64,000 nt of DNA from Hyaloraphidium curvatum SAG 235-1. Its lineage: Eukaryota > Fungi > Monoblepharomycota. Position numbers and translations under genes: made by a program. The stretch lies in the NCBI GenBank assembly GCA_025558095.1, contig JAIVFI010000028.1, positions 124,001 to 188,000 on the forward strand. The letters run 5' to 3'. The notes under the pieces are model-generated. The model searched no databases. It was not told the origin of the DNA and saw nothing but the letters and a program-made list of their open reading frames with translations. Below, one piece after another: positions 7,550 through 44,343 of this stretch (position 1 is its first letter; every line of letters starts with the position of its first letter).

Positions 7550-9485
7550 ATGAGGCCACGCGCTGTCCTGCTCGCCCTCGGGCTGGCCGCGACTCTGCTG
7601 CTCGGGAGCGTTCTCCACGTCGATGCAGTAATCCGCAACGGATACAGTAGGTGTCTGCTTCGAATTCTGAGCGAGAAGCGGAGCTGATTAGCACCCTGCC
7701 CGACAGACTGCAACCCGACTGCGTGCAAGCTCCCGTCGTGCCTCTGCGCCTCCGATAGCCCGCCGCTGCCGGTAGCAGACACGCCGCAGTTCGTCACGAT
7801 AACCTTCGATGACGGCATCTCCGAGTTCCACAACGCCGAGGCCCGCCAGTTCCTCTACGCGAGCCGCAACCCGAACGGCTGTCCGATCGCCGCCACCCAC
7901 TTCCTCTCAAGGCAATGGACCGACTTCCACACCGTCAACGCGCTCTACGACCAGGGCCACGAGATTGCCGACCACACGGTGGACCACCTGGGCACCCCTT
8001 CGCTGGAGCAGATTACGGTCGCCCGCGACATCTACGAGCGCTGGGGTCGTGTGCCTAAGAAGGACATTGTCGGCTTCCGCGCGCCCTTCCTGGCCTACTC
8101 CCTCGACACCTTCCGCAACCTGCAGACCGCCGGTGGCTTCGTCTACGACTCGTCCATGTCGACCAACGGCCGGAACCCGCATTGGCCTTACACGATGGAC
8201 TACGGTCTGGCGGACGAGTGCTTCACGGGCGTCTGCGACAACCTGGACACGCGGTTCCCGGGCCTGTGGGAGATCCCGATGTACCAGCTCCACTATCCCG
8301 CGGACGGCTCCATCCTCGGCCTCATGGACCCGCAGTTTGCCGGCACGGAGGAGATCCTGGACATGTTCAAGTACAACTTCAGGAACCACTGGCAGACTTC
8401 GAGGGCTCCTTTCGGCATCTACCTGCACACGGCATGGTCGGTCCTGGTTGTCTGCGCTTCGCCCGTCGTGCGGCTGACATTCCGCTCGAAACAGGATCCT
8501 GAACGACCCCACGAACCGCCTCAGCATCCTCACCCGGTTCTTCGAGTGGACCCAGACCGAGTTCCCCTCCAACTCGGTGTGGTGGGTCTCGAACCAGCAG
8601 CTCCTCTCGTGGCTCCGCTCCCCCGTCCCCATCTCGACCCTCGCCTCTTCGCCTCCTTCCTACCTGTCCTGCGGTGCCGCCGAGGTCGGCCCTGGGATGA
8701 GGCTCAGGACCATGCAGATGGACCGCGACTACTCCCCGTGCCCGAAGGACCGCCTACAGACCTGCATGTTCCCTGACTACAGCTGGAAGTACTGCCTTGC
8801 CCCCGGGGAGAAGGGCTGCCCCTCCTCGCAGCCCTCGGTTGTGGACCCCATCCCGGCGGGCGTCACCACCGGCGGCAACTCGAGCAGTCCCAGCTCGGGG
8901 GGGTGCGCGATGCCCGGCGACGGATGCGCGTTCGGAAGGTGGCAGCAGGCTTCGTGCGCTTGCGCCTGCGCGGGCAGCGAGAACGCCACGGCGGATGCCA
9001 GTGGGCGGCAGGGGTACTGCTTGGACGAGGGGGGGAGGTGCACCCTGGAGAAGGTCGTGGATCCCAGGAACAACCGGTTCCTGAGCTGCGCCGAGAGTGC
9101 AAAGGCCAGGGGCGACGAGCACTACTTCGACGGGGCCAAGACAACGGCGGCATCGAGCACCACGGCCACGACCGCTTCAAGCACCGCCGCCGCACCCACG
9201 TCGACGGGTTTGCCCCCGCCCACATCCGCCCCGGCTTCCTCTTCCTCGGTGCCCGTAGCGGCAATCGTGGCTCCGATCGTCATCCTGGTGGCCCTCGGCG
9301 GCGCAGGCGTCGCCTTCTTCCTCTTGCGCCGCTCGCGGAGGTCCAAGGTGGCCAAGGTCGGCGTGGAGCCTCCGGCCAGCGGCGACACCGAAAAGGCCGT
9401 GGTGATGCGGACGACCGACATTGAGCGCACCGCGAGCGGGCTGTCGCCGGCGGACATGGTGCGGCGGAGCAGCTCGGCTCTTTGA
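7550..9485 (+). CDS. Membrane-anchored CE4 polysaccharide (chitin) deacetylase; introns 7647-7706 and 8437-8494
   Basis: Signal peptide, CxLPxCxC, PQFVTITFDD, NPNGCP, HEIADHTVDH, GFRAPFL, YDSS, WPYTMD, GLWEIPM, RAPFGIYLH, then a Cys-rich region, Ser/Thr stalk, TM helix and basic tail. Confidence 0.88.
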
Positions 9486-11880: not shown

Positions 11881-12799
11881 ATGGGCTCGGCATCTGCCAA
11901 TGCTCTGGAGCTCTACCACGCGAGCTTTTCCTACTTCTCCACCGTCGCGCGGCTGGCGCTCGCCGAAGCCGGACTCTCCTACCAGTCCCACCTCATCGAC
12001 CTCGTCAAGAACGAGCAGATGGCGCTGGATTATCTGAAGATGAATCCGAACGGCACCGTTCCCACCCTGATTTTCCGTCCGCCGGACGCCGAGGAACGCG
12101 TCTTTGTCGAGAGCCGCGACATCTTGGACTGGTGCGCCGGGCTGAAGCCGATGCTGAACAGCGGCAAGGACGTCGAGGCCTTCGTCGAGCGGTGGTATAA
12201 AGGAGACTTGGCCTACGACGAAGCGACAGGCCCCGCCGCACCGGAAGCCAAGCGGTCCGACCTGGTGAAGAAGTGGGAGGGGCGGGCACAGGAGCTGGAA
12301 AGCGCCTTGGAAAAGGCCAAGGCAGAGGGAGATCTCCATCTCATCGGAGTTCTCGAAGCGAAACGCGACTCGGTGGGCTCGATGCGCAAGGCGTCCGCGA
12401 CGCCAGTTGAGCCCTGCCCCGCAGAACTTCGAGAAGGCGCGCAAGTTCCCCAGCAGGGGTCCGCCGTGGGGCCCGGACAGGGCCGACGCGATGGTCTCGG
12501 AGATCGAGAAGTTCCTGCTCGCGGACGGCAAGGATCCCGCGAAGGACTGGATCTGCGGGCCCGAGTTCAGCAAGGCCGACATCTGCGCCGTGGTCCTCCT
12601 CGATCGGCTCGCCTCGTATGGCTACGAGGGGGTCGTTTGGGGCAACGGTGAGTCTGGCGGTGTTGTTTGACCGGAGATGGGTGCTGGACGCGGCTTTCCA
12701 CCAGGGAAGCACGAACCCGTCGTGCAGTACCTCCGCCGGGTCCGCGCACGGCCGTCCTACCACGAGGGCTTCACGAAATGGGCCAAGAAGGATCATTGA
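11881..12799 (+). CDS. Glutathione S-transferase (GDAP1-like); introns 12373-12424 and 12648-12704
   Basis: LYHASFSYFS.VARLALAE, YLKMNPNGTVPTL, ESRDI, WICGPEFSKADI, YLRRVRARPSY. Confidence 0.85.
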
Positions 12800-28407: not shown

Positions 28408-29688
28408 ATGCACGTGCTCATCGCCGGCGGCGGCCTCGGCGGCCTGCTGCTCGCGCACTCGCTCCGCGGCACGCCGCACACGTGCTCCGTGCTGGAGCGC
28501 GACGCGTCGCCGCTCGCGAGGGAACAGGGGCTGGTCATCGGGCTGGCGCAGGAGGGCGTCGACGCGCTCGTCAAGGCGGGGCTGGCCGGCGTTTGCCGCG
28601 AGTTGTTCGCGCCGGACGGGCCGGGAGACGTGTTCATCGGGGACCAGTGGGCCCGGTGCCTCATACGCGGGGCAGGGTGGCTCCGCGTCTCGCTGCCTCC
28701 TGTCGAGCCCGGCGGACTGCCGGACGTGCGAAGCGGGCTCGTGGACCGCGCTCTCCTCCGCCGGGCGCTGGCCGCCGCGCTCCCCGAGGGCACGATCAGA
28801 TGGGGTGCACGCGTGGCTGGCTTCCGCGAGGAGGGTGCGAAGATCGCCGCGGTTCTCGACGGCGGCGGAGAGGAGTGGGGCGACGTGCTCGTTGGCGCGG
28901 ACGGGGCCCGAAGCGCGGTGCGGAAGCAGCTCGCGCCGGCGCTGCTGCCAAAGGAGCTGGGGATCTACAACACCGCCGGCACCTTCCACGTGGCCCCGGG
29001 CTCGCCGGAATCGGAAGGCCCGCTGTACAAAGAATCCCTCCGCTCGCTCGTCCGCCTCGGCGGGCTGGACGGCGCTTCCCTCCTCCTATTCACCCCCGGC
29101 CGCGCGCCGGGCTCGGACCGCTCCTTCACGCTGTGGGCGCTCACCGCCCCCCTGCGGCACTTCGACCCCTCCGCCGACTCCCTCCCGCAATCCATCCGCA
29201 TCCTCGAATCGCATTTCCGCATCCCCGAGGCCGCCTCTTTGGTCTCGCTCACCCAACCCGCAGACGTCTATCCCGGGTATGAGATCACCTCCGTCGACCC
29301 CTCGGACCTCGCCGCCTTCCCCATTAAACCCCCTGGATGCAGGGCCACCCTGCTAGGCGATGCAGCGCACAAGACCACCACCCAGGCCGGCCTCGGCGCC
29401 TCGGCCGCCTTCTCGGACGCATTGGAGCTCGCTTCCGCCCTCCGCTCTTCGGGGGACGCCGCGGATCCGACGCCCCTGCTCCGCGGGTACGAAGCCGCGA
29501 TGGCCGCCCGGGCCAAGGGTGTCGTCGCGGCGTCGGCGGGCAACACGCGGCGGCTGCATGCCGAAATGGGGTGGGCGGCGAGGGCGGCGGCGCAGTGGGT
29601 CATGTGGGCGGCGGGATGGGCGATCTGGGGGGTGGGGGCGGGAAGGGTGCTGGTGATGCGGCTGGTCGGGCTGCTTTCGGGGCGGTGA
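28408..29688 (+). CDS. FAD-dependent monooxygenase (class A flavoprotein)
   Basis: GGGLGG Rossmann motif, VDRALLRRAL, DVLVGADGARSAVR, TLLGDAAH...G.GA..A.SDA. Confidence 0.88.
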   Translation: MHVLIAGGGLGGLLLAHSLRGTPHTCSVLERDASPLAREQGLVIGLAQEGVDALVKAGLAGVCRELFAPDGPGDVFIGDQWARCLIRGAGWLRVSLPPVEPGGLPDVRSGLVDRALLRRALAAALPEGTIRWGARVAGFREEGAKIAAVLDGGGEEWGDVLVGADGARSAVRKQLAPALLPKELGIYNTAGTFHVAPGSPESEGPLYKESLRSLVRLGGLDGASLLLFTPGRAPGSDRSFTLWALTAPLRHFDPSADSLPQSIRILESHFRIPEAASLVSLTQPADVYPGYEITSVDPSDLAAFPIKPPGCRATLLGDAAHKTTTQAGLGASAAFSDALELASALRSSGDAADPTPLLRGYEAAMAARAKGVVAASAGNTRRLHAEMGWAARAAAQWVMWAAGWAIWGVGAGRVLVMRLVGLLSGR

Positions 29689-29864
29689 ATGTTGCTCTCG
29701 AATCTTGATGCTTTGACGTCTCTGCGCGGAATCCGAGCCCAAGCTTCAGGACCGACTGTGGAGGCAACCGACAAGAGAATGGCCTCATCTGTATCAATCA
29801 ACAAAATCGCATGTGGATGCTAGCTTCGCCCCCGACTCGGATCGTCCAATCGCCCGCGCGGCCC

Positions 29865-31382
29865 TCAGAGGCGCGCTTCGAAACCCAGCGAGGTCTGCCG
29901 CGCGGAGGCAGGCTTCTTGGCCTCCTGCTTTTCGTAGGCCTTGGGGTCGAACATCTTGTTCTCGTGCTCGGGGTAGAGCGCGGTGGGGCCGTACTGCGAA
30001 GGAGGAAGAAGGAGGTAAGCTGAGGTGAACGGAACCGCAGGCCAGCTTCAAGCAACCCACCAGCCAATCCACGTAGTCGTACGAGTGGATGTCGCGCTCC
30101 TCGAACACCCTGTTGCGCCACTCGCGCGCCTCGCCCTCGAGGTGCCACAGGTCGCCCCAGATCCACGCGGTCGTGAGCACGCGGCGGCAGTGCTCCGGCC
30201 GCACCGCGTTGTACGCCTGGAGCACCCTCTCCCACGGGATTCCCGTCGCGGTGCCCCTGCTTGCCGACCCCTTGGGCCCGCCCGCGAGGCCCACGTGCTC
30301 CGAGAGCACCCACGCGTCCTCGATGGCCATCACCGCGCCCTGGGCGAGGTACTGCAGCGGCGGGTGCGCGGCGTCGCCCGTGAGCGCGATGCGGCCCTTG
30401 ACCCAGTCCATGATCGGCTCGCGGGTGAACATGCGCCACCACTTGTCGCGCCACATGTTGGGCAGGCACTCCCGCACCCCGGGGTGGGTCTTGGCAAACG
30501 CGCCGTCGAGCTCGTCGGGGGTGCCCCAGTCGGCCTCGCCGCGGACGGCCTTGGGCGACTCGAACACCGCGACGAGGTTGAACATCTCCCCCGCGCGGAG
30601 GGGGTACTGCACAAGGTGGCACTTGGGCCCGACGTAGACGACGACGTCCTTGAGCGAGACGCCGAGCTCGCGGACCGCCTTGTCGGCGGGGAGCGTGCCG
30701 CGGTAGGCGACGTAGCTCGACGAGACGGGCTTGTCGTCGCTTAGCAGGGGGCGGGCGACGGAGTGCATGCCGTCGGCGGCCATGACGAGCTCGGCGCGCT
30801 CGGTGCGGTCGCCGAACTTTGCGACGGCGCCGCCGTCGACGTTCTCGTAGCCGGTGCAGGCGGCGTTGGTGACGAGGTCGACGCCCACGCGCTTGCAGGC
30901 GCGCAGGAAGACGCCGTGCAGGTCCGAGCGGTGGATGACGAGGTACGGGTGGCCGTAGCGGCGCTCGCAGTCCTTGAGGTCAAGGCGAGTGAGCTGCACC
31001 GGAGGCGTGATCAGCGATGTGCACCATATGACGGTGCTAAAGGATCCACGCCTCCTTGCCTGTGATCGCATCGCGTGCGACGATGTTCTCGGGCAGCACC
31101 CCAAGGCTGACCACCTCGTCCAGCAGCCCCCAGTCGTCGAGGATGCGCGTGCAGTTGGGCGCGATCTGCAGGCCGGCGCCGGCCTCGCCGAACTCGGGCG
31201 CGCGTTCGAGCACGCGGACCTTGAGGCCCTTGCGGGTGAGCGCGAAGGCGGTCGCGAGGCCGCCAATCCCGCCGCCGACAACGACTGGCGGGGGCGGGAG
31301 TCAGTTCTGAGAGGTTTGGGAGACGGCGAGGGAGGGACACACCGACGTCGACGTCCGGCTTCTTCACGTTCAGGCTCGACAT
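29865..31382 (-). CDS. 3-hydroxybenzoate 6-hydroxylase-like FAD monooxygenase; introns 31285-31342, 30994-31051 (GC-AG), 29994-30060
   Basis: Spliced VVVGGGIGG, ERAPEFGEAGAGLQIAPN, RYGHPYLVIHRSDLH, YVGPKCHLVQYPLR.GE, WGTPDEL, GDAAHPPLQYLAQGAVMAIED, WGDLWH, DWL/YGPTAL. These match actinobacterial 3HB6H as recalled. Confidence 0.85.
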
Positions 31383-31641
31383 GGCTTCGGGCGAATGAGT
31401 GCCGAGTGCAACGAGTGGAGGTATGAGCTGGAGGATACGAGGTTTGCCGTCTGTCCGAACCGGGGGTTAAAGGTCCCTCCCGATTTGCCCCCCGTACGGA
31501 GCTTCGCCCCCATCGCCACTCCCGCTGCATGCCGGGGGCAACGCTTGAGTCATTAAAGCAGCGGGAGGCAGTCGCCGTGCTCGAAGCGATTTGCCCGAAG
31601 GAAAGGCATCTCACCACCCGGAGTACCCGACGCACACCAGC
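31383..31641. promoter_or_regulatory. Bidirectional promoter (3HB6H / gentisate dioxygenase) with C[CG]GNNGGCAA motifs
   Basis: 259-bp head-to-head gap; exact motif at 31485-31494 (reverse) and 31532-31541; near-matches at 31562 and 31444. Confidence 0.55.
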
Positions 31642-32860
31642 ATGTCCCCCGTCACCCAGGAAGTCGCCAACGGCGTGCACGCTGTCGCCCCGCAGGCCGC
31701 CGCCAAGGCAGGCGGCAAGATACAGGAGACCATTACGGACCTGCCGGCCCTCGGGCGCCTCGAAGACCTGCCTCAGGTGCGCTGCCGTCGCCGTGTCGAA
31801 GCTCCGAATCATGTGCTGACCCTCCTTCGCATTGCAGGACTACCGCGACGATCTGACCAAGCTCAACCTGGTCCCCCTGTGGCCCTCGCTCCGCGCCGTC
31901 CTCCCCCCCGGCGTGCCCTCGCGACGCACGCAGGCCACCGCGTGGGCCTACACGGACATCCGCCCCCTGCTCCTCAAGGCCGGCGAGCTCACCCCCATGG
32001 AAAAGGCCGAGCGCCGCGTGCTCGTCCTCGCCAACCCCGGCCGCGGCCTCGAGAACATGCAGGCGTCGCCGTCGATCTACCTCGGCATGCAGCTGCTCCT
32101 CCCCGGCGAGTTCGCACCGGCGCACCGGCACACCCCAAACGCCGTCCGCATGGTGGTCGAGGGCAAGGGGGCGTACACCGTCGTGGCGGGCGAGAAGTGT
32201 CCGATGGAGCGCGGCGACCTGATCCTCACCCCGACGGGGCAGTGGCACGAGCACGAGCACGCCGGCTCGGAGCCCGTGGTCTGGCTCGACGTGCTCGACC
32301 TGCCCCTCGTGTACTACGCCGAGGCGTCGTACGTCATCGAGGGCTCGAGGCAGGGGCACACGGCCAAGCGCGGCGACAAGCTCTACGCCCGCGGCGGGGT
32401 GCTCCCCACCCCGGCCTTCCGCCGCGCCGCCGATCCCTACCCCATGCTGCGCTATCCCTGGGCCGAGGCCAAGGCGGCGCTGCTGGCGCTGGCCGAGACG
32501 GGCGAGGAGCGCGTGCAGGTGTCGTACGTCAACCCCGAGACCGGAGCTCCGTGCGAGAACAACCTCCGCTTCGGCGCGATGATGCTCCGCCCGGGGCAGC
32601 AGCTCACGCTACCCGTGCGGAGCACCGCGCAGGTGTTCCACGCCATCGAGGGCGCGGCTTCGGTGCAGGTCGATGGCAGGGACTTTGCGCTCGCGACGGC
32701 TGACACGGCGTGCGCACCCGGGTACGCCGACATCGCGCTGAGCAACGCGAGCGCGACGGAGCCGGCGTTCGTGTTCGTCGCCGACGAGGAGCCGATCCAG
32801 AAGAAAATGGGCGTGTACGAGGAGAGGGGGTTCGAGGCCGGCGTGCCCAACATGCCGTGA
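31642..32860 (+). CDS. nagI: Gentisate 1,2-dioxygenase (bicupin), NagI-like; intron 31777-31837
   Basis: LGRLEDLPQ/DYRDDLTKLNLVPLWPSLRAVLPP, AERRVLVLANPG, APAHRHT and WHEH iron ligands, YVNPETG. Confidence 0.92.
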
Positions 32861-33115
32861 ATCGGGGCGAGAGGCGGTTCTGTATTGCATCCAGTAGTCA
32901 ACGCTTGGTTTTGCATCCACTCTTTCCTCGTCTGTTCCCGCCGGATGGCCGCTCCTCCCGTTCAGCGGCGGCCGCCCGGGGAAGCACCTCGTGCTCCTGG
33001 TAGCGAGCTCCATGGTAGCCGCCTTGCTGGAAGGGTCGCACGTGGAGCAGGTCGGGGGAGCAGCTGAATGCGGGCAAGCTGCCGGGCGAAAGTCATCACT
33101 AAAATCAGGTGAAGG

Positions 33116-34141
33116 CTAGGTTTCGGGATCTGGAATGTCCTCGACAATGAGTTCGGAAAGATTATATGCCGCTGCCACGATCTCTTCCTGCACGGGAATG
33201 TACTTCCGGCGCCGTTTCACGTGGAGGCGACGCAGCCCGGGCAGCCGGAAAGGCCACTTCCCGCCGAGGCCAAGGAATTCGCCCACGTCGAACTCTTTCC
33301 ACGATGCCATGAGCAGGGTGAACTGGGTAAGGCGGATGCCGCCGACGTGCAGCCACTTCCAGAGGTCCTCGGCCCATCGCGGCTCCATGCAGCGCAGCAC
33401 GACGAGTTCCTGAAGCTTTGGGCATCCCATGACGAAGGGCTCCACGGGCCAAAAGTCCCGGAAGGGATGGACCGTCAAGCGCCTGATGTTGTCGAGCCGA
33501 AGCCCGTGCGAGAGACAAAGTTCGGATAGATCGTAACGCTTCTCGGGGTGTTTGTCGTCCTAAAGGTCAAGGTGCACAGGCGCGGATAGCACCAGCTCTT
33601 CCAGATTGGGCAATCCGGCCAAGCAGTAGAGAAAGTCTCGCGGCAGCCGGTCGATTTCTACGCGCACGATTTTCCGGCTGCCCATGAGGAGGCGCTGCAG
33701 TTCCCATTCCCACATTTCGTCCTGCTCCATGGCCATGGCCTGAGGCGCCGAGATATCCAGTCGCCGGATCAGCGACGCTGGTGCAACCCCGCGTGGCCCC
33801 GAGGCAAGCAAGAAGTCGATGAAGGTCTCGAGGAGGGCGCAGAACAGGGTGTGGTCTGGCAGAGACCGACGGACGAAAGGAAACAACCGAAGACGCATGC
33901 TACCGTACAGCAGCGGCGACAAAAAGTCGTAGGTGTCAGCGGAAGCCAAGGCGAGCTCGACGAGGCTCTTCCGCGGGAGGTAGCGCGCGATGTGGCGCCA
34001 GAGCTCCACAGGAAGCGCGAACGACGACGCGGCGCCGCCCTCGTCGGGGGGGCCCGCATCGCCCACGACGACATCGGCCGCCATTTTCAGAGGGCGATCT
34101 TTCGTTTCCGTGCCAGCGTTGGTACCGCTGGTCGCGTGCAA
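33116..34141 (-). pseudogene. F-box/LRR-like gene with in-frame TAG at 33560-33562
   Basis: F-box-like LPVELWRHIARYL; LRR-like LPNLEEL, CPKLQEL, LPGLRRL. ORFs 33560-34141 and 33116-33478 are in the same frame, separated only by the stop. Confidence 0.55.
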
Positions 34142-34485
34142 GGAGTCGCTCCCCGGGGCTCCGGACCCTGAGCGTTTAGACGTTCACACGTTCGCGGCCA
34201 GAATGGACCCCGTGCCCAGCAAACAGATCCAGATCGTCTTTATACTCCCGAACTTGATATATATGTAGAGCGTCTTCACATTTTTCTGAGCTGGGCGCAT
34301 CCGCCACCTGTCCTGTCACCCGGCCGCCGGCGCACCTGGTCGCACGGCATTCCAAGACTACCTTGAGAGGATGGATCGGACGAACAAGGTAGCGCGAAGC
34401 GGATCAGATACAATGCGCATCACCATGAATTCAAAGAGGAAACCCAATAACAATGGCAGTCTACAGATGCTGCTTTTTCCATGAT

Positions 34486-36261
34486 TTAGCTCTTCTCCTC
34501 GGCGGCCTTCTCAGCGACCTCGATCGAAGCGTCCGGCGCCACCTTGCCGATCGGGATCGCGATGGCCTCGTGGTGGCCGCTCTCCATGATCTGCATGTCC
34601 TCGGCATTCTTCGCGGCCTGGTAGCGGAGGATGTAGGGGATCGCTGGACGCAGGAAGGATCAGATCCGGGCCGATGTGCAGAGGGCGTGGGAGACCCACG
34701 GATGAAGCAGAGGAGCGAAATGGCGTAGCAGCCGTACGAGGCGAACATGCCGGGCACGTAGTTGGGCGCGTCCTTGTTGGGGAACAGGAACGGCCCGACG
34801 ACGAGGGCGCCGGCGTAGGCGGTGAGGGTGAAGGCCGAGTTGACCGTGGCGCGGCCAGTGCCCTTGGAGCTGTTGGCGCGGTAGGCCCAGATGATGGGGT
34901 AGGCCGAGGTGGTGAGGCCGGCGAGGAGGACGAAGAGGAGGCGCACGCCGGCGGGGACGGCGGATGGGTTGAGGGCGGTGATGGCGAGGGGGAGGGAGCC
35001 GACGAGCGGGAAGAAGGCGATGGTGAAGATGATGTGCTTGATGCGCTCGTTGGTCCAGTCCGAGTGCCAGCTGTTGATCAGGATGGCGATGGTGTTGCAG
35101 CCGTGCGAGAGGGCGGCGATGCCGTTGGCCTGGACCGAGGTCTTGAAGCCGAGACCCTGAATGATCGAGGGAAGCAGGGCGGAGGAGCCAGCGACTGGGA
35201 GATCGAGGAAGTAAGGGCGGATCGGGTGCTGCAGACGGTAAAGACACCCACTGGGAATGGCGATCAAGAACTGGAAGAAGAAGAAGAGCCACAGGACGGG
35301 GTCTGCGAGCTCCTTCAAAATGTCGTCCTTGGTGATCTTGTCCAGAGCGGAAGGCGCATTGGGCGGCAGGCGGCGGACGGCGATGTCTTTCTCGGCGTCG
35401 GTAAGGAACTTTGCGTCTTGTGGGAAACCGGGCAGAATGAATTAGAGTACAACGCCGTAGATGATGGCCGGGATGCCCTCGAGGATAAAGAGCCACTGCC
35501 AGCTGAACAGGCCGCCGAGGCCGTTCATGTTGGAGACGCCGATGGCGATGAAGCCGCCGACCATGCCCGCGACGCCGAGGCCGGTGAACGAGACGCCCAT
35601 GCGCTTGCCGCGCTCGCGCTGTGTGTACCTGGAAGGACGAGCCGAGGTCAGTCGAAGCGCGGGAGGTAGAGAGGCCGCAACCCACCAGAACGAGAGGTAA
35701 TAGGGCACGCCGGGAAGCAGACCGGCCTCGGCGACACCGAGGAAGAAGCGTGTTGCCATCGCGCCGGCAAAGTTGTGCACCACGGCCTGGCACATGACGA
35801 TCGCGCCCCAGGTGACCATGATGCGGGAGAACCACTTGGGCGCCGACATCTTCTTGAGCAGGAAGTTGCTGAACGGCTCGCAGAGGAACAGGCCGATGCC
35901 GTAGATGGAGATGACCCAGTTGAACTGCACGCCGGTGAGGTTCCACGAGGCCTCGATGGACTCGTCGGTGCCCGAGTTCAGGACCTTGGCGTTGGCCATA
36001 TTCTGGCGGTCGAGGTAGCCAAGGAACATCATGATGAAGCACGGGAGCAGGATGCGGTTGTCCATCTTGCGGACGATGCGGCGCTCCTCCTCCGCCGACC
36101 AGTCGCCCTCGGGGATGAAGGACTCCTGCGCGACATCGATCTTCTTGTTCTTGTCGGGCCCTGAGAAGAAAAACGCGTAAGTGGCGCGTCGTTGAGCCGC
36201 GCAACGCCAGCGTCCCGAGGGACGGGCGTCGCGTTCGTCACTCACAAAGGCAGCCTGCCAT
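34486..36261 (-). CDS. MFS transporter, fungal anion:cation symporter (Dal5/Tna1-like); 4 introns
   Basis: EERRIVRKMD.RI, YLDRQNMANAK, EPFSN.LLKK, RFFLGVAEAG..PG, WQWLFILEGIP, DAPNYVPG. Spliced start MAGCLWPDK, spliced end AAEEKS. Confidence 0.88.
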
Positions 36262-36505
36262 TGCGACGGTGGTTGTCGGTGTCGGGGAGAACGTTCGAGA
36301 GGGCGACTGGCAATGAAGACGGGAGGCAATGCGGGAGGCATCCTTGCCTGCGGCCTCTTCTAGCGCGGGTGTTTGCCCTCGGAGTTGGGGGGCAAGTCCC
36401 GCCTCCCTTGCCACCCCAGTCCCCCCGAATCACAGAAAAGGTCCGCAGGCAAACCAGCTGCTGCCGCATCGTCTAGACTGTCTGCACGTTCCGCCCACAC
36501 TCACG
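36262..36505. promoter_or_regulatory. Bidirectional promoter (MFS / fumarylpyruvate hydrolase) with clustered C[CG]GNNGGCAA motifs
   Basis: Exact motif at 36320, 36344 (rev), 36373 (rev) and 36443; near-matches at 36304, 36332, 36386 and 36408. Confidence 0.6.
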
Positions 36506-37266
36506 ATGACCGCCTCGGAGTACCTGTTCGAGCCTCCGCCCGTCCGGTCGCTGCCCGTTCGCGGCGAGCAGCGAAAGTTCCCCGTCAACCGCCTCTTCTT
36601 CGTGGGCCGCAACTACCATGCTCACGCCCGGGAGATGGGCCGGCCGGTGGACAAGTCGGTGGAGAGGCCGTTCTACTTCACCAAGTCCATTGACACGCTG
36701 ACCCTGAGCGGTGCGGTGCTTACTACCAGTCGCGCTCGGACTCCAACTGATTCGCGCTTCCAGGTGCCACCACGCCCTATCCTCCCTCGACCAAGAACTA
36801 CCACTTCGAGATGGAGCTGGTGGTTGCCATCGGCAAGCCCGGCTTCCGCGTTCTTGCCGACAAGGCCGCCGAGATCGTGTATGGATACGCCGCCGGGCTC
36901 GACATGACCCGACGCGACGTGCAGCTGGAGGCCCGGGACAAGGGCCGGCCGTGGGACCTGGGCAAGGACGTGGAGCACTCGAGCGTGTGCTCCGAGATCG
37001 TGCCGATGGAGGGGCAGATCGTGTCCAAGGGGGCGATCGTGCTGAGCGTCAACGGCGCGACCAAGCAGTCCTCGGACGTTGCGAAGCTCATCTGGGACAT
37101 CCCGGAGATCATCGCCGACCTGAGCCAGTTCTACCACCTGCAGGCCGGGGACTTGATCTACACGGGTACGCCGGAGGGCGTCGCCGCGGTGCTGCCAGGC
37201 GACAAGATCGAGGGCAGCGTCGAGGGCATTGCCGAGGTGGGGCTGACGGTCGGTAATGTAGAGTAA
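36506..37266 (+). CDS. nagK: Fumarylpyruvate hydrolase (FAH family), NagK-like; intron 36711-36763
   Basis: FPVNRLFFVGRNYHAHAREMGRPVDKSVE, YHFEMELVVAIGK, GLDMTRRD.Q..ARDKGRPWD.GKD, GDLIYTGTPEGV. Confidence 0.9.
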
Positions 37267-37373
37267 ATGCGTTCATCTTCATGGGAATTGCAAAACAAAG
37301 ACCGTCCTTCCTTGCTCTGATCCCGTCCTCCCAACTCCCAAGGTCCCGTCTCGGCAAACCCCGCAACAATGTC

Positions 37374-39173
37374 CTACGGCATCAGCTCACCGGAAGCACT
37401 CATGAGATTCCAAAGCTTCAGCGACGGCAGCCAAGAAGAAACGCCGCGGTCGACCTGGTTCATCGCCTCCGAGAGCGCGGCGACGGGTGAGGTGGGTTCC
37501 GACACCCCCATCTTGGCGAACTGAGCGTGGACTTCGTCGAGCTCGGCGTCGGCGACGGATGGGCCGGCGAGCCTGTCGTCCAGGGCGCCCGCCGACCTCG
37601 CTGCGCCCATGAAGTCGGCCGCCATCTTGGCCACCAGCGGCGCCCCCGTCGCCATGGCCGCGAGGGTGCGCGCAATGTCCTCCGTGTTCTTGCGCAGCCT
37701 GTCCGCGGCCCACTCCGACGCGGGATCATCCTTGACAACGCGGAACAGGACGACGGAGAACATGCCGACCCGCACAGCGTGGGTGCTCACTATGGGGTGC
37801 AAGATCGGGAGATCTGACTGGCTGAGGTGCTCCAGGAGGTCGCACATAGTCTGCAAACGGTCAAGGATCCGCAGGAAGACCGAGGAGCCGAAGAGGGTGT
37901 CGACAGATGGCAAAGATGAGGGGCCCTCCCCCGGATCCGCAGCGGCTTCGGGCCATGTCGCCAAGACGGTGAACAGCATCCCGAAGAAGACGTGAGCGCA
38001 CGCCGAGTCGGCAAAGCAGGGGTGCGACATGAGCGGAAGGGGGTCCCCTGCGAGAAGGGACACGCCCACGGCTTCCGGCATGGCGTCGATGAAGACGCCT
38101 GTGAGGTCGTACAACTCCTCGAGCGCGTCGCAGTAGGTACGCTCGTCCGCCGTGTACTCGTCGCGCTCTTTGCCGAGGATCGTCAACGGGTATACCCTGT
38201 GTTCGCTGGAAAAGACGCGGAGTTTGCTGCGTGTGCCCCGGATGAAGGTCTGCACGGTGCACACCGAAAGGCAGCTTGCCCGCTGCTCAAAGATGGCGTC
38301 GACGATCTGTTTCATGGCAGCGGTACCGGCTTCCAGCGCCGGCAACTTGGAGCAGGCCGAAAAGTCGGCGAAGCGCACGGGACCCAAGGCTCCCGCCGCG
38401 CAAAGGGCACCGAAGGCAGCCTCGGGATCAGGGCTGAGGAAGTAGGTCTCGTGTGCCGGAAGAGGCACCGGGAAGACGGCGGCGTCGAAGAGACCCGAAC
38501 TGCCGAAGTAAGAAGCGGTTCCGTTGTCGAAGGCATTGAACATGATCCAGCAGCGCAGCGCCGAGTCCGCTCTGATCCACTCCTCGACCGTAGCGGGTTC
38601 CCGCATCTCCTGGGAGAAGCTTCCCGAGTTGTCGAGGCACAGGGTGGCGAGGGTGGCGCGACCCGTCATTATGAGCGGGCCCACGGCCGCCGACATGGTC
38701 CGGAAGACAAAGAAGTGTAGGAGGTACACCACGGTTTGTGCCGTCTCGAGCGGATCGGCCAGGCCAGCCAACACGCCCTTCAGAGCGGCGCTGGCAAACA
38801 CGCGTCCGGCATCGAGATCCGAAGCGCCAAGCGCCGCCATCGAAAGCAGCAGCATCGGGCCCGGGGCGGCCAGCGCCGAGGGGTGAACAATGCAGGGAGA
38901 GGCGCCGGATGCCACGAACGCCGCGGCGGCCTCGGCCAGCCCGGGGACGCCGCTCACCGCAACGGCCAGGGCAATGTCGGGCGGCGCCGCGGCCTCGGCG
39001 GGCGGCGCTATGGCCACCTTAGGCGGGGCGGCCGCCGCCAGCTCGCAGTCGCGGCCCAGCGCTGCGCAGCGCTGGCACGCCGCGCCCGCCTCGCCGCTGG
39101 GCTCGCATTTTTTCTTGTCCGTAAAACAGGAAGTGCAGGACTTGCGGGCAACGCCGTACTTCCTCGGGGGCAT
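37374..39173 (-). CDS. Zn(II)2Cys6 transcription factor, paralog 1
   Basis: CTSCFTDKKKC..CQRC......C binuclear cluster followed by a fungal-TF middle region (WIRADSALRCW). Intronless. Confidence 0.85.
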   Translation of the reverse strand: MPPRKYGVARKSCTSCFTDKKKCEPSGEAGAACQRCAALGRDCELAAAAPPKVAIAPPAEAAAPPDIALAVAVSGVPGLAEAAAAFVASGASPCIVHPSALAAPGPMLLLSMAALGASDLDAGRVFASAALKGVLAGLADPLETAQTVVYLLHFFVFRTMSAAVGPLIMTGRATLATLCLDNSGSFSQEMREPATVEEWIRADSALRCWIMFNAFDNGTASYFGSSGLFDAAVFPVPLPAHETYFLSPDPEAAFGALCAAGALGPVRFADFSACSKLPALEAGTAAMKQIVDAIFEQRASCLSVCTVQTFIRGTRSKLRVFSSEHRVYPLTILGKERDEYTADERTYCDALEELYDLTGVFIDAMPEAVGVSLLAGDPLPLMSHPCFADSACAHVFFGMLFTVLATWPEAAADPGEGPSSLPSVDTLFGSSVFLRILDRLQTMCDLLEHLSQSDLPILHPIVSTHAVRVGMFSVVLFRVVKDDPASEWAADRLRKNTEDIARTLAAMATGAPLVAKMAADFMGAARSAGALDDRLAGPSVADAELDEVHAQFAKMGVSEPTSPVAALSEAMNQVDRGVSSWLPSLKLWNLMSASGELMP

Positions 39174-39679
39174 CGTCGGAGTCGGTGCGCGTGAGATGGC
39201 TGGGCCGGGACCGAACCCAGCGATGGGATTAAGCGCCAAGTCGTCACATTCCAAAAACAGCGACCGGAAGCATTCAGGGCGGATCGTCTCCATGTCAGAG
39301 GTACCCTCACAGCTAGCATCCAGAATCCGATCTCGCGCGGGGCTGTTTGAATGAAATTGAATGGCCGATCGTTCGCCACACGGTCCAAACGGATCGGCAA
39401 AAGCCCCCCGTACGGCCAGTCCCTGGCCGGCGGCAAAAGCGCTCCTATCGCTGCAGCTCCAGTTTGAGCAGAATGCGCGTCGCCCTTCAAGCCCGCGTGG
39501 CCCGCTGTGAAAGGTCTCCCAAGATGGCACATCTGTGGTGCGATCCATGCACGGGTCCGCTCGCCGCCCGAAGCAGACCGGCTCCAATTTTTCGTGCCTG
39601 GCTTCATTCCAGATTGGCACAGGCCATCTGATGTTTCATCCAGGTGCATCGAACGAAGCAACGTCCGGCCAAGACATTC

Positions 39680-41479
39680 CTACTTATCTAGCTTACCCGA
39701 AATCGCTCTCCTCGTCCAATTCTCCAACGACGGCAGCCATGTCGACACGCCCCGATCGAGCTGGATCATCCCCTCCGAGAGCGCCGCCACGGGCGACTCG
39801 CGCTCCGCGATCCCCAACCTTGCAAACTCGACGTGCACCTCGCCGAGCTCGGCATCCGTCACCTCCGGTCCCGCGAACCCTTCGTCCAGGGCACCCGCTT
39901 CCCTTGCGGCGCGCGCAAAGTCTGCCGCGACCTTGGCCACCAGCGGCGCGCGGCCGAGCCCGACGGCCCCCAGCGCGCGGGCGATGAACTCCACGTTCCT
40001 TCGCAGCCGCGCCGCCACCCACTCCGAGGAAAGATCGTCCCGCACAACGCGGAAAAGTGCCACGCTGAACATGCCGACCCGCATCGCGTGGACGCTCAAG
40101 ACCGGGTGCAGCTGCGCGAGGTCTGCGTCGCCGAGGTGCTCCAGCAGGTCGCTCATGGTCTGCACGCGGTCAAGAATGCGCACGAAGGCCGGGGAGCCGA
40201 AGAGGGCGTCGGAGGGCAAAGGAGACGCAGGTGTCTCGAGCGGATCGGCGGCGGCCTCGAGCCAGGTGGCCATGACGGCAAAGGCCATCCCGAAAAAGCT
40301 GTGCGCGCACGCCTTGTTGGGGAAGCAGGGGTTCGAGAAAAGGGGGAGAGGGTCCCCGGCCAGCAGCGGTCCGCCCACGGCTTCCGGCATGGCGTCCACG
40401 AAAATGCCCACCAGCTCGTGCAACGCATCCAGCGCGTCCCAGTAGGTCCGCTCATCCGGAGTGCACTGCTCGCGGTCCTTGCCCATGATCGCAAGGGGGT
40501 TCACGCGGCGGTCGATAGCAAAGCCGCGGAGCTTACTGCGCACGCTGCGGACAAAGGCCTGCACCGAGCAGACGGCAAGGCAGCTTGCGCGCCGCGCAAA
40601 GACGGCCCCGACTATCTGGCGAATAGCAGCGCTCCCGGCTTCGAGAGCGGCCATCTGCACACACGCCGAAAAGTCCGCAAAACGGCCTGGGCCGAAGGCT
40701 CCGGTTGCGCAGAGGGCGACGAACGCGGCCCGCGGATCTGGGCTGAAGAAGTAGTCCTCGTGCGCCGGGAGTGGCACCGGGCATATGGCGGCATCGAACA
40801 GCGCATCATCGCCGAAGTAGGAAGCAGCACCGCTGTCGAAAGCGTTGAAGACGCACCAACATCGCAGGGCCGAGTCTGCTCTGATCCAGACGTCGGGCGT
40901 TGAGGGCTCACGCACTTCGCGCGAGAAGGCACCTGAGGCGTCCAGGCACAGGGTCGCCAAGGCAGCTCGACCCGTAACCAGGAGCGGGGCGACGGCGGCC
41001 GACATCGTCCTGAAAACGAAAAAGTGAAGGAGCAGGACCACGCACTGCGCGGTCTCGAGTGGATCCACCAAGCCCGCCAGCGTTCTTTCTAGGGCGGCCC
41101 CAGCAAAGAACCGCGCCTCGTCGAGATCAGATGCACCGAGGGACGCCATTGCGAGGAGAAGCGTCGGTCCCGGCGCGGCCAGCGTGGTTCGGTGGAGGAC
41201 GGGAGGCGACGTGCCGCCGGCCACGAATGCCGCCGCCGCCGCGGCCAGCCCCGGAACTGCGCTCGGGCCATCGGTCAGGGAGCCCGGTGGCGTTATTGTC
41301 GTGGCATCGGCCGGCGGCGCGGCGGGGGCACGGGCGGCCACCGCGAACTCGCAGCTGCGGCCCAGCTCGGCGCAGCGCTCGCACTCAGTTCCGCCCGGCC
41401 GGGGCTGGCATTTTTTCTTGTCCGCGAAGCATTGGGCACACGACCGGCGGGCGAAACCGGATTTCCTCCTCGGGGGCAT
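39680..41479 (-). CDS. Zn(II)2Cys6 transcription factor, paralog 2 (tandem duplicate)
   Basis: CAQCFADKKKC..CERC......C; colinear with 37374-39173 along its whole length. Start may be 41497. Confidence 0.85.
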   Translation of the reverse strand: MPPRRKSGFARRSCAQCFADKKKCQPRPGGTECERCAELGRSCEFAVAARAPAAPPADATTITPPGSLTDGPSAVPGLAAAAAAFVAGGTSPPVLHRTTLAAPGPTLLLAMASLGASDLDEARFFAGAALERTLAGLVDPLETAQCVVLLLHFFVFRTMSAAVAPLLVTGRAALATLCLDASGAFSREVREPSTPDVWIRADSALRCWCVFNAFDSGAASYFGDDALFDAAICPVPLPAHEDYFFSPDPRAAFVALCATGAFGPGRFADFSACVQMAALEAGSAAIRQIVGAVFARRASCLAVCSVQAFVRSVRSKLRGFAIDRRVNPLAIMGKDREQCTPDERTYWDALDALHELVGIFVDAMPEAVGGPLLAGDPLPLFSNPCFPNKACAHSFFGMAFAVMATWLEAAADPLETPASPLPSDALFGSPAFVRILDRVQTMSDLLEHLGDADLAQLHPVLSVHAMRVGMFSVALFRVVRDDLSSEWVAARLRRNVEFIARALGAVGLGRAPLVAKVAADFARAAREAGALDEGFAGPEVTDAELGEVHVEFARLGIAERESPVAALSEGMIQLDRGVSTWLPSLENWTRRAISGKLDK

Positions 41480-41621: not shown

Positions 41622-43034
41622 CTACTCGTCGTCCGCCTTTTTCGCCTCGTCCTCCTCCTGGCCCTCCATCTGGACCAACACCTTGCCCTCCCCGACCGTG
41701 TCGCCGACCTTGTACATGACCTTGGCGATTTTGCCTGCATCGGGAGCTTTGATGACGTGCTGGTGGCGGCGACTGTGAGCGATGTGCCACGGATGCGCTG
41801 CGTTGGGCCCACCTCCATCTTCATTGCCTCCAAGACGACGAGGGGCTGTCCCTTTTCCACTACCGCACCGGGTTCCACCAGGACCTGGAGGCAAACGAAC
41901 CGTGAGCTCCGATCACGCGCTTCAACGAGAGCGGCTCACCGAAATGATGCGGCACGGCATCGGCGTAATGACGCTGCCCGCCGCCTCCATCTTGTGCGCC
42001 TGCCTCGCGTATGGCGGCAGCGGCAGCTGCAGCACCTCGAGCCCCGAGGGCAGGAAAAGGTTCACCGAACCGTCCCTCTCGGCCCTGGCGTCCCGCACGA
42101 CGACCGCGTTGCATTCCACCAGAGACCGCGGCGACGCGCCGTGCGGCGGCAAGTCCAGCCGCAGCGAGACGGCGCAAGTGTCCTTGCCCGCGCGCGCGGC
42201 GCGGGAGCCGACCTCGGCGCGCAGCACCCTCACGCCCTCGAGCCTGAGCACCACCTTGGGCTCCCCCTTTGCCGGCTTCTCGGAGAGCGCGATCCCGTAG
42301 CTCCCGTCGCGTGCAAACACCACCTCCACCTCGCCCCTGACCTGCCTCCGCCCGCCCTCGGCCTTGGCGTCGGGCACCTCCCATCCCACCTCGCCCTTCC
42401 ACCCGCCGGGCCCGTTGACCGCGAATCCCCTGAACGCGGCCCACGGATCCGGCTCCCCGGGCGCCGGCAGCCCCCCCGCGCTCGCCAGCAGCGCCGCGGC
42501 CCCCGCCGCCGCCGCCTCCCTCGACGGCGTCCCCTCCTCCACCGGCAGCAGCTCCGCCTTCCTCGCGGCGATGAACCCCGTGTCCACGTCCCCCTCCGCG
42601 AACCTGGCATCCGTGCACAGCCGCTTCAAAAACTCGACGTTGGTCCCCGGCCCCACGATCTCCGTTCGCGCCAGCGCCTCGCGCATCCGCCGCAGCGCCT
42701 CGCCGCGGTCGCGGCCCCACGCGACCAGCTTGGCCACCATGGGGTCGTATAGCACGCCGACCTCGTCTCCCTCGCGGACGCCGGTCTCGATGCGGAGGGT
42801 GGGGGTGGCGGGGGGGAAGCGGAGATGCAGGAGGGGGCCGGGCGCGGGGAAGAAGTTGTTGGCCGGGTTCTCGGCGTACAGGCGGGTCTCGAAGGCCCAG
42901 CCGTTGGGTGCGCGCGGGCCGGCGGTGGCGCGGTCCGAGTTGGTGGCAAGCCAGGAGGCGGGGAGGCCGTTGCCCGAGGCGACCTCGACCTGCCACTCGA
43001 CGAGGTCGACGCCGGCGACCATCTCCGTGACGGG

Positions 43035-43071
<37 letters not shown>

Positions 43072-44343
43072 TAGTAGAGGGGTTCGGGGGTGTCGAGAGT
43101 GGCCGCGTCGAGGATGAACTCGACGGTGCCCGCGCCGCGGTACTTGACGGCGCGGGCGGCGGCGATCGCCGAGGAGTGCAGGCGCGCGCGGAGGTCCTGG
43201 GGCAGATGTGGCTGCACAGCAGGGTGGGAATGGACACAAATCAGTCATGAAGACCACGGACCGCCTGATACGCAACTCACCGCCGGGGCCTCCTCAATGA
43301 TCTTCTGGTGCCGCCGCTGGACCGAGCAGTCGCGCTCGTACAGGTGCACATACCCGTCCTCCCCATCAGCAAACACCTGCACCTCGACGTGCCGCGGCCG
43401 GGTGATGTACTTTTCCACCAGCACCCTGCCGTCGCCGAAGCTGCGCTCGGCCTCGCGCCGCGCGCTCTCGAGCTGCTCCGGGAACTCGGCCGCCGAAGTT
43501 GCGATGCGCATGCCCTTGCCGCCGCCACCCTTAACGGCCTTGATCAGCACGGGGAAGCCGATCCGCTCGGCCTCGGCGGCCAGGAGGGCGGGGGACTGGT
43601 CCTCGCCGTGATAGCCGGGCACACAGGGGACGCCGGCGGCGAGCATGAGGCGTTTCGATTCGCTGCCATGACAGAGGGACACATGAGACATCAGGAGGGA
43701 GGTAGAACGGCCAGCAACCGCGGCATTCGCACCTTTTGGAGCCCATGTCGCGGATCGAATGCCCTCGCGGACCGATGAAGGCCAGCCCCTTGGATTCGAC
43801 GAGGTCCGCAAAGTCCGCATTCTCCGACAGGAACCCGTAGCCCGGATGGATGCCCTTTGCGCCGCACGCCAGCGCGATCTCGACGATGCGGTCGCCCTTG
43901 AGGTAGCTCTCGGAGGCGGCCTGCCCGCCCAGCGCGTATGCCTCGTCGGCCATCGCGACCCACATGCCCTGGCGGTCTGCGTCCGAGTACACGGCCACGG
44001 AGGCGATGCCGAGGCGCTTGAGGGTGGCGATGACGCGCACTGCGATCTCGCCGCGGTTCGCGACGAGGACCTTTGGCAGCAGCGGGTTGCGGGGCCGGGC
44101 GGCCCCGGCGTCGGAGTCCGCGCTTCCCGCGGTCGCAAAGAGCCGTGCGGAAGCGGACGAGACGGCAGCGACGCGGCGGGCCGGGGCATTAGCGCGGCGG
44201 GGCGCGTGCGGAATTTGACGCGCGGGCGCCGACGACAGGGGGCGCGCCGGGGGGAAGCGAAGGGCCCCGCTCGTCCGCGCCGGTGGAGAGCGCGCCGCAA
44301 GGAGCGCCGCCGGCGCTGCGGGAAGCGCGCGCCGCGGGAACAT
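41622..44343 (-). CDS. mccA: Biotin carboxylase + biotinyl domain, 3-methylcrotonyl-CoA carboxylase alpha-like, mitochondrial; several introns
   Basis: Presequence [67 protein letters not shown] biotin site. Confidence 0.85.

Follow-up and report, generated by a model that had tools for sequence, protein, structure and literature searches.

We analyzed a 64,000-nucleotide stretch (the window) of the genome of Hyaloraphidium curvatum, a monoblepharid (Monoblepharidomycetes) and thus a fungus of chytrid grade. The window spans C28:124001-188000 on a 607-kb contig (C28) of a 31.9-Mb assembly, and our subject is the group of six genes that occupies its positions 29865-41479. The predicted products are a 3-hydroxybenzoate 6-hydroxylase-like (3HB6H-like) protein, hereafter the hydroxylase, a gentisate 1,2-dioxygenase (GDO), an MFS transporter, a fumarylpyruvate hydrolase (FPH) and two tandem Zn2Cys6-type regulators, TF1 and TF2 (Table 1). 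Hydroxylase and GDO stand head-to-head across a 259-bp spacer, and the MFS and FPH genes are likewise head-to-head. A preliminary description of this DNA had named the same six genes, and each of them lies where it was placed by that description.

Table 1 Features of the cluster, with positions counted from the first nucleotide of the window
Feature	Positions	Strand	Basis and remarks
3-hydroxybenzoate 6-hydroxylase-like flavoprotein monooxygenase, actinobacterial type	29865..31382	-	NCBI model P0121, 444 aa
Divergent hydroxylase/GDO promoter	31383..31641	.	Two exact CSGRRGGCAA sites: 31485-31494 (-), 31532-31541 (+)
Gentisate 1,2-dioxygenase (GDO), Burkholderiales type	31642..32860	+	Model P0001, Cupin_2
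MFS transporter, fungal origin	about 34461..36341	-	MFS_1 match; in-frame introns; first exon and last ~30 codons not placed
Region upstream of FPH start, divergent MFS/FPH promoter, overlapping MFS 5' end	36161..36505	.	Two exact CSGRRGGCAA sites: 36320-36329 (+), 36373-36382 (-), plus near-matches
Fumarylpyruvate hydrolase (FPH, FAH family), Comamonadaceae type	36506..37266	+	Model P0241, FAA_hydrolase
Zn2Cys6-type transcription factor TF1	37374..39173	-	599 aa, intronless, six-Cys motif residues 13-43
Zn2Cys6-type transcription factor TF2	39680..41479	-	599 aa, intronless, six-Cys motif; tandem paralogue of TF1
F-box-like ORF remnants, between GDO and MFS	33116..34141	-	F-box / F-box-like Pfam 17 bits, below cutoff

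The deposited NCBI models of the three enzymes, each a 100% match to an H. curvatum NCBI protein, were mapped exon by exon onto the window, and the homology searches were made with single exons or with the deposited proteins as queries. As had been claimed at the outset, the reading frame of each enzyme is broken by introns (53-67 nt). The hydroxylase has four exons (31382-31344, 31285-31052, 30993-30061 and 29993-29868, followed by the stop codon at 29865-29867) and three introns of 58, 58 and 67 nt. GDO has two exons (31642-31776 and 31838-32857) separated by one intron of 61 nt (31777-31837), and FPH has two (36506-36715 and 36769-37266) separated by a GT-AG intron of 53 nt (36716-36768). 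Intron ends are GT-AG with one exception, the middle hydroxylase intron (30994-31051), which is GC-AG; the paralogous intron in the second copy of the cluster, described below, begins with the canonical GT. Several of the introns contain CTGAC/CTGAT-like stretches of the branch-site kind. From these features and the deposited annotation, we infer that the introns are spliced.

The open frame of GDO ends with ...VPNMP (stop codon 32858-32860), and the ...PNMP terminus is common to a GDO from another eukaryote contig (L001, below). The deposited model splices out this in-frame stop (window 32858-32960) and ends with ...TSCSW; because the unspliced frame ends as the L001 protein does, the 3' intron in that model may be an error of annotation.

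The hydroxylase has the FAD_binding_3 fold and aligns over its full length with 3HB6H of Rhodococcus jostii RHA1 (PDB codes 4BJY/4BJZ; 412 bits for 4BJY), keeping the residues aligned to positions 213 (His) and 217 (Tyr), presumably residues of the substrate site. It differs from that enzyme by its three introns and by a C-terminal tail of ~35 residues ending in -ARL. For its main exon, identity to proteins of Streptosporangium and Nonomuraea is ~72%, and all the named close relatives among its best 120 matches belong to the Actinomycetota. The preliminary description had likened the protein to 3HB6H of Rhodococcus and Corynebacterium, which has to be corrected: the closest kin are Streptosporangium, Nonomuraea and related Actinomycetota, and the R. 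jostii enzyme is only the nearest solved structure.

GDO matches Cupin_2 (E 2e-23) and E. coli GDO (2D40, 201 bits), and it keeps the HRH...H stretch, whose histidines we take to be the Fe ligands. Identity to Burkholderiales GDOs is 64-72%. Its best 119 matches beyond itself are 68-72% identical, and those with names come from Burkholderiales or other Betaproteobacteria and from one Azospirillum plasmid. Identity is 69% to a Polaromonas naphthalenivorans CJ2 protein named gentisate 1,2-dioxygenase in UniRef, which we assume to be the characterized enzyme of that strain; NCBI names close Burkholderiales relatives just 'cupin domain-containing protein'. FPH matches FAA_hydrolase (E 3e-33), and its second exon shares 77-80% identity with proteins of Hydrogenophaga and Limnohabitans. 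It scores 204 bits against PDB 6J5Y and 196 bits against 4MAQ, compared with 70 bits against the maleylpyruvate hydrolase 6JVV, and JGI names its homologues fumarylpyruvate hydrolase. By these comparisons the protein matches the fumarylpyruvate-hydrolase type and not the maleylpyruvate-hydrolase type. The earlier likening of GDO and FPH to betaproteobacterial NagI and NagK holds as regards the donor group, with the nearest kin of both being Burkholderiales (64-80% identity).

The transporter and the regulators have another background. The MFS protein (tblastn alignment over 36158-34701) is closest to an H. curvatum paralogue (58%), followed by proteins of Gonapodya prolifera (50%), Gonapodya sp. 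and other fungi. This ordering mirrors the relationships of the species, which argues that the gene is native, and the transporter is thus fungal, as first proposed. There was no tblastn match to it in the donor-type bacterial loci that we fetched. Its best NCBIfam match is TIGR00893, an ACS-family model, and HpaX matches too. TF1 and TF2 are 66% identical and both carry the N-terminal motif CX2CX6CX8-9CX2CX6C, so that the two Zn2Cys6 regulators of the preliminary description may stand as Zn2Cys6-like proteins. A language-model feature search in Atlas placed the regulators at 0.97 with Zn(2)-C6/Fungal_trans clusters (29 of 30 matches for TF2). Pfam gave no match to either full-length protein at E 0.01, and Fungal_trans was not detected.

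Both divergent promoters contain exact copies of the pattern CSGRRGGCAA, which occurs nine times in the window against 2.7 expected; four of the nine fall within the ~600 bp of promoter. Sites are retained in the promoters of the second copy, including those upstream of GDO and at MFS/FPH. Sites of this kind are candidates for regulation of both promoters.

Second copy and homologues in other eukaryotes

H. curvatum holds a second, rearranged copy of the cluster at C28:61686-76153, which puts it ~80 kb upstream of the cluster described above and about 48-62 kb before the window begins. It repeats window positions 29832-31325 (hydroxylase), 31324-32860 (GDO) and 34423-37271 (MFS-FPH) at ~94% nucleotide identity. 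The gene order is unlike that of the window copy, and there is a single regulator paralogue, the third overall, with 66-69% protein identity. One breakpoint lies inside hydroxylase intron 1, and for this reason the first hydroxylase exon of the second copy could not be placed. Between the copies the synonymous divergence (dS) is 0.04-0.14 and dN/dS is 0-0.09; both copies are therefore under purifying selection. An open reading frame (ORF) for a flavin monooxygenase of the FMO-like / Pyr_redox kind lies between the hydroxylase and the regulator of the second copy (C28:69330-71246; L017:5330-7246); the window copy contains nothing that corresponds to it.

The bacterial-type enzyme genes also occur in other eukaryotes, next to eukaryotic genes on three Logan contigs that derive from two samples. 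On L001 (SRR23967301), GDO, FPH and hydroxylase follow in that order within 4.5 kb, beside genes for beta'-COP and V-ATPase c. H. curvatum has its own beta'-COP exon on another contig (C27), and the two exons are 97% identical. On L037 (SRR26194948) a second cupin gene is followed by GDO and hydroxylase, and their neighbour is an ELO gene 62% identical to the one in H. curvatum. L002, from the same sample as L037, has FPH beside kinase genes. In addition, GDO on L001 is adjoined by an AMP-binding (CoA-ligase-like) ORF, represented by its C-terminal part, and the second cupin dioxygenase of L037 is 35% identical to GDO.

One intron of the hydroxylase, after ...DWL and before YGPTAL, is shared in position by L001, L037 and the two H. 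curvatum copies (window 29994-30060; L001:5641-5706; L037 about 8596-8697), with the donor sites GTGGGT, GTGAGT and GTGAGC. The other introns differ by lineage. GDO and FPH of L001 are intronless, the GDO intron of L037 lies ~5 codons from that of H. curvatum, and the FPH intron of L002 lies ~11 codons away. A single shared intron with later private gains argues that the hydroxylase was acquired once, long ago, and diverged afterwards. The C-termini of the hydroxylase are -ARL in H. curvatum, -PKL in L001 and -AKL in L037, and the Streptosporangium protein used for comparison (P0123) ends differently; the three termini resemble PTS1 signals, and the enzymes may be targeted to peroxisomes. The G+C content at third codon positions (GC3) of the three L001 genes is 0.82-0.86, compared with 0.60-0.68 in the flanking genes. 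Taken together, the sequences suggest that the transfers are old and reached a common ancestor, with domestication thereafter.

These contigs and the second copy also bear on whether the genes are fungal at all. The high G+C content and the 64-80% identity to bacterial proteins could be the mark of contamination or of an assembly chimera, an explanation that we find barely credible and that is already contradicted: introns are present in all three genes, the 607-kb contig places them between fungal genes, a second diverged copy lies on the same contig, and in two further samples, assembled independently, these genes are linked to eukaryotic ones for coatomer, V-ATPase and ELO. The cluster is integrated in the chromosome of its host. 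The preliminary description had judged bacterial contamination unlikely because of the introns, and the contig, its fungal neighbour genes and the second copy add to that judgment.

Some neighbours of the cluster complete the picture. The F-box-like remnants between GDO and MFS gave no blastn match in the second copy and are probably not members of the pathway. Directly past TF2, at 41860-44300 (-), is a gene of the biotin carboxylase / carbamoyl-phosphate-synthase-L type (alpha subunit of methylcrotonyl-CoA carboxylase or a similar carboxylase). On the other side an intronless ORF of 426 aa at 28408-29688 (+) encodes an FAD-dependent monooxygenase, tail to tail with the hydroxylase, the stop codons 176 bp apart. 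We weighed its inclusion in the cluster and decided against it because it lies outside the duplicated unit and because the Atlas feature search suggested eukaryotic, mostly ascomycete, FAD-binding families.

Bacterial affinity of the enzymes

Apart from the proteins of H. curvatum itself, the top 120 matches of the hydroxylase, GDO and FPH are bacterial or unnamed environmental proteins, with no named fungal protein in any of the three lists. No Gonapodya protein is in them either; the genome was not searched as a target of its own, although Gonapodya relatives of the MFS protein did turn up.

In the GDO tree (a careful IQ-TREE run; support as ultrafast bootstrap/SH-aLRT), the four sequences from eukaryotes make up one clade (99/94) within a clade of Burkholderiales (98/94), and quick runs agree. 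In the hydroxylase tree (a quick run), the H. curvatum copies group with L001 (support 99) and then with L037 and one metagenomic protein (96), within the Actinomycetota; the hydroxylases of proteobacterial operons sit on a very long outgroup branch. In the FPH tree the eukaryote sequences lie without resolution in a group that consists for the most part of Hydrogenophaga and Limnohabitans sequences, and their monophyly is not rejected (p-AU 0.357). GDO and hydroxylase are thus nested with support in bacterial clades, and FPH is weakly resolved. Two donor phyla had been suggested as a possibility beforehand, and this division is borne out, with GDO and FPH going to the Burkholderiales and the hydroxylase falling inside the Actinomycetota clade. 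Base composition was examined as a signal of transfer in H. curvatum and set aside, as GC3 is 0.8-0.97 in native and acquired genes alike.

Horizontal gene transfer is well supported by these results. The opposite explanation, that the genes are ancient in eukaryotes, were passed on vertically and have disappeared nearly everywhere else, could appeal to the patchy occurrence of gentisate clusters in fungi, among which loss is common (PMC5144973, PMC3914699). It is nevertheless very improbable, since the eukaryote sequences are nested in shallow Burkholderiales or Actinomycetota diversity at 64-80% identity, and none of the top-120 lists contains a named fungal homologue beyond H. curvatum.

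The arrangement of the genes in bacteria provides insight into how they may have traveled. We collected 18 loci from bacterial genomes, 16 of them from Burkholderiales or from metagenome-assembled genomes of unclassified Betaproteobacteria or Pseudomonadota. FPH directly follows GDO on the same strand in 12 of these 16, with its start at or within ~60 bp of the GDO end. This adjacency in Burkholderiales operons suggests that GDO and FPH were probably transferred together. A hydroxylase precedes GDO in 10 of the 16 loci, and it is 34-39% identical to that of H. curvatum, which fits a separate origin of the H. curvatum hydroxylase.

A single transfer would require one bacterial donor with a mosaic operon, in which an actinobacterial-type hydroxylase had joined a Burkholderiales-type GDO-FPH pair. 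Aromatic-catabolic operons are commonly shuffled among bacteria, and the tight linkage of all three genes within 4.5 kb of L001 would agree with such an origin. We regard it as unlikely all the same: the hydroxylases beside GDO in the 10 Burkholderiales loci have just the low identity given above, every named close relative of the H. curvatum hydroxylase is from the Actinomycetota, and no mosaic donor was seen in the loci at hand, a set that did not extend to a search of actinobacterial neighbourhoods.

Proposed pathway and history

The cluster is most likely a nuclear one for the uptake of 3-hydroxybenzoate or gentisate and its conversion to fumarate and pyruvate, with a history of two bacterial donors, eukaryotization and duplication. 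In the pathway that we propose, the MFS transporter would import the substrate, the hydroxylase would turn 3-hydroxybenzoate into gentisate, and GDO would open the gentisate ring to give maleylpyruvate. With an FPH of the fumarylpyruvate type a cis-trans isomerase is probably needed, and no gene for one is present in the cluster. Conversion of maleylpyruvate to fumarylpyruvate might be provided by an unlinked glutathione-dependent zeta-class GST, the best maiA-like gene being at C16:521265-522001 (two exons, 149 and 38 bits), or by spontaneous isomerization. There is also a weak GST_N-like match at 11929-12138 (+), 33.5 bits to the maiA model and ~18 kb from the cluster. The FAH-family hydrolase would then cleave fumarylpyruvate. 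One or both of the Zn2Cys6 factors probably activate the two divergent promoters through the CSGRRGGCAA-like sites.

The history would have begun with the arrival of GDO and FPH from a Burkholderiales-like bacterium, probably together, and of the hydroxylase from an actinobacterium, both at a time when H. curvatum and at least two other eukaryote lineages had not yet diverged. The genes would then have gained introns and PTS1-like C-termini and have been joined by a transporter and regulators of native origin. Later, the whole unit would have been duplicated and rearranged in H. curvatum. Our fuller scenario carries these steps further, and we hold it with a little better than even confidence. 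In this scenario an ancestor common to Hyaloraphidium and at least two other eukaryote lineages took up a GDO-FPH operon fragment of Burkholderiales origin and a hydroxylase from an actinobacterium. The hydroxylase acquired the shared early intron and the peroxisomal-type tail, with lineage-specific introns added later; recruitment brought in a native permease of the ACS type together with Zn2Cys6 factors that have a promoter motif of their own; the cluster was duplicated; and the outcome converged on the unrelated ascomycete cluster in its gene content.

Several observations weigh against this account. The best NCBIfam match of the hydroxylase, NF006021 (3-hydroxybenzoate 6-monooxygenase), scores 315 bits and does not reach the equivalog cutoff of 459, and GDO scores 245 bits with TIGR02272, for which the cutoff is 442. 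With Zn_clus, the N-terminal 60 aa of TF1 and TF2 score 19.9 and 19.1 bits, just under the cutoff of 21. The CSGRRGGCAA pattern was defined after inspection of the sequence, so the sites are only a lead. The FPH tree is poorly resolved, and because the GDO and FPH trees point to different genera, co-transfer is only suggested, by operon adjacency alone. The trees were built without the canonical fungal GDO, MNX2 and FPH1 sequences, so that placement outside the fungal clade is argued from the absence of such proteins in the top-120 lists. Lastly, among the hosts of L001, L002 and L037, transfer between eukaryotes cannot be separated from vertical descent.

The missed equivalog cutoffs for 3HB6H and GDO bear as well on the choice of substrate. 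The pathway might act on salicylate or another substituted hydroxybenzoate instead of 3-hydroxybenzoate: homologues are often labelled 'salicylate hydroxylase' in the sources, and Greene et al. propose that relaxed specificity may apply to fungal GDO homologues (PMC3914699). This alternative seems rather unlikely to us, given that the best family match of the hydroxylase is still 3-hydroxybenzoate 6-monooxygenase, that the R. jostii enzyme is matched at 412 bits with 213 (His) and 217 (Tyr) kept, and that the relatives of GDO, including the Polaromonas CJ2 protein, are named as gentisate dioxygenases. The gene set also suggests that this little-studied aquatic fungus may feed on plant- or lignin-derived hydroxybenzoates.

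Comparison with known systems

Gentisate clusters with a hydroxylase, GDO, FPH, MFS transporter and C6 factor are known from Pezizomycotina (PMC3914699) and from Candida parapsilosis and Mucorales (PMC5144973, PMC8929692), and transfers from fungus to fungus have been reported for them (PMC3914699, PMC5144973, PMC8929692). The preliminary description had pointed to C. parapsilosis as an analogous case. Its gene list for that cluster agrees with the literature, which adds GFA1 to MNX2, HBT1, GDX1, FPH1 and GTF1 (PMC8929692). The corresponding cluster of Aspergillus and other Pezizomycotina, designated GC, comprises sahG, gdoG, fphG, ctfG and mfsG (PMC3914699). Our literature search found no paper joining Hyaloraphidium with gentisate or hydroxybenzoate.

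Like the Candida GP and Aspergillus GC clusters, that of H. curvatum brings together a flavin hydroxylase, GDO, FPH, an MFS permease and a Zn2Cys6 activator, in this case within 11.6 kb. The differences are several. The H. curvatum enzymes are of recent bacterial type, with no fungal orthologue named in the top-120 lists. Candida Hbt1 was assigned by its authors to the AAHS family (PMC5566891), whereas the H. curvatum permease best matches an ACS-family model and is not AAHS-like. The H. curvatum cluster is without GFA1 or a stilbene dioxygenase, and it has two paralogous regulators, or three with the second copy. The site of Gtf1p is GGAN7TCC, while the candidate site in H. curvatum is CSGRRGGCAA. 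Bacterial-type enzymes together with an ACS-type permease argue that the same parts list was reached independently, in support of the independent assembly proposed at the outset.

The comparison with the hydroxylase-GDO-FPH operons of Burkholderiales (nagI/nagK-like and mhb-like) shows what was kept and what was changed. GDO and FPH remain 64-80% identical to the operon proteins, with the same chemistry predicted. The two genes are adjacent in the operons; in H. curvatum they are 3.6 kb apart, each at a divergent promoter of its own and each with an intron. The operon hydroxylase is replaced by the actinobacterial type, and no homologue of a bacterial regulator or transporter is retained in the H. 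curvatum cluster.

Fungal gentisate clusters and transfers from bacteria to fungi were each known already, and the H. curvatum locus combines the two. Several of its stages are still readable: a probable operon fragment and a gene of another phylum, a shared intron and then later ones, targeting-like C-termini, recruited regulators and transporter, and a recent duplication. It is a tractable case for the study of how bacterial genes become regulated genes of a eukaryotic pathway, and of the convergent assembly of metabolic clusters. A parallel is found in Wickerhamiella/Starmerella yeasts, which are said (Kominek et al., in 2019) to have acquired enterobactin genes as a bacterial operon. In both instances genes of a bacterial pathway moved into a fungal lineage, stayed linked and were 'eukaryotized'. 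H. curvatum differs from those yeasts by its two donor phyla, its native regulators and transporter, the introns and PTS1-like ends that its enzymes gained, and its standing as a host of zoosporic grade.

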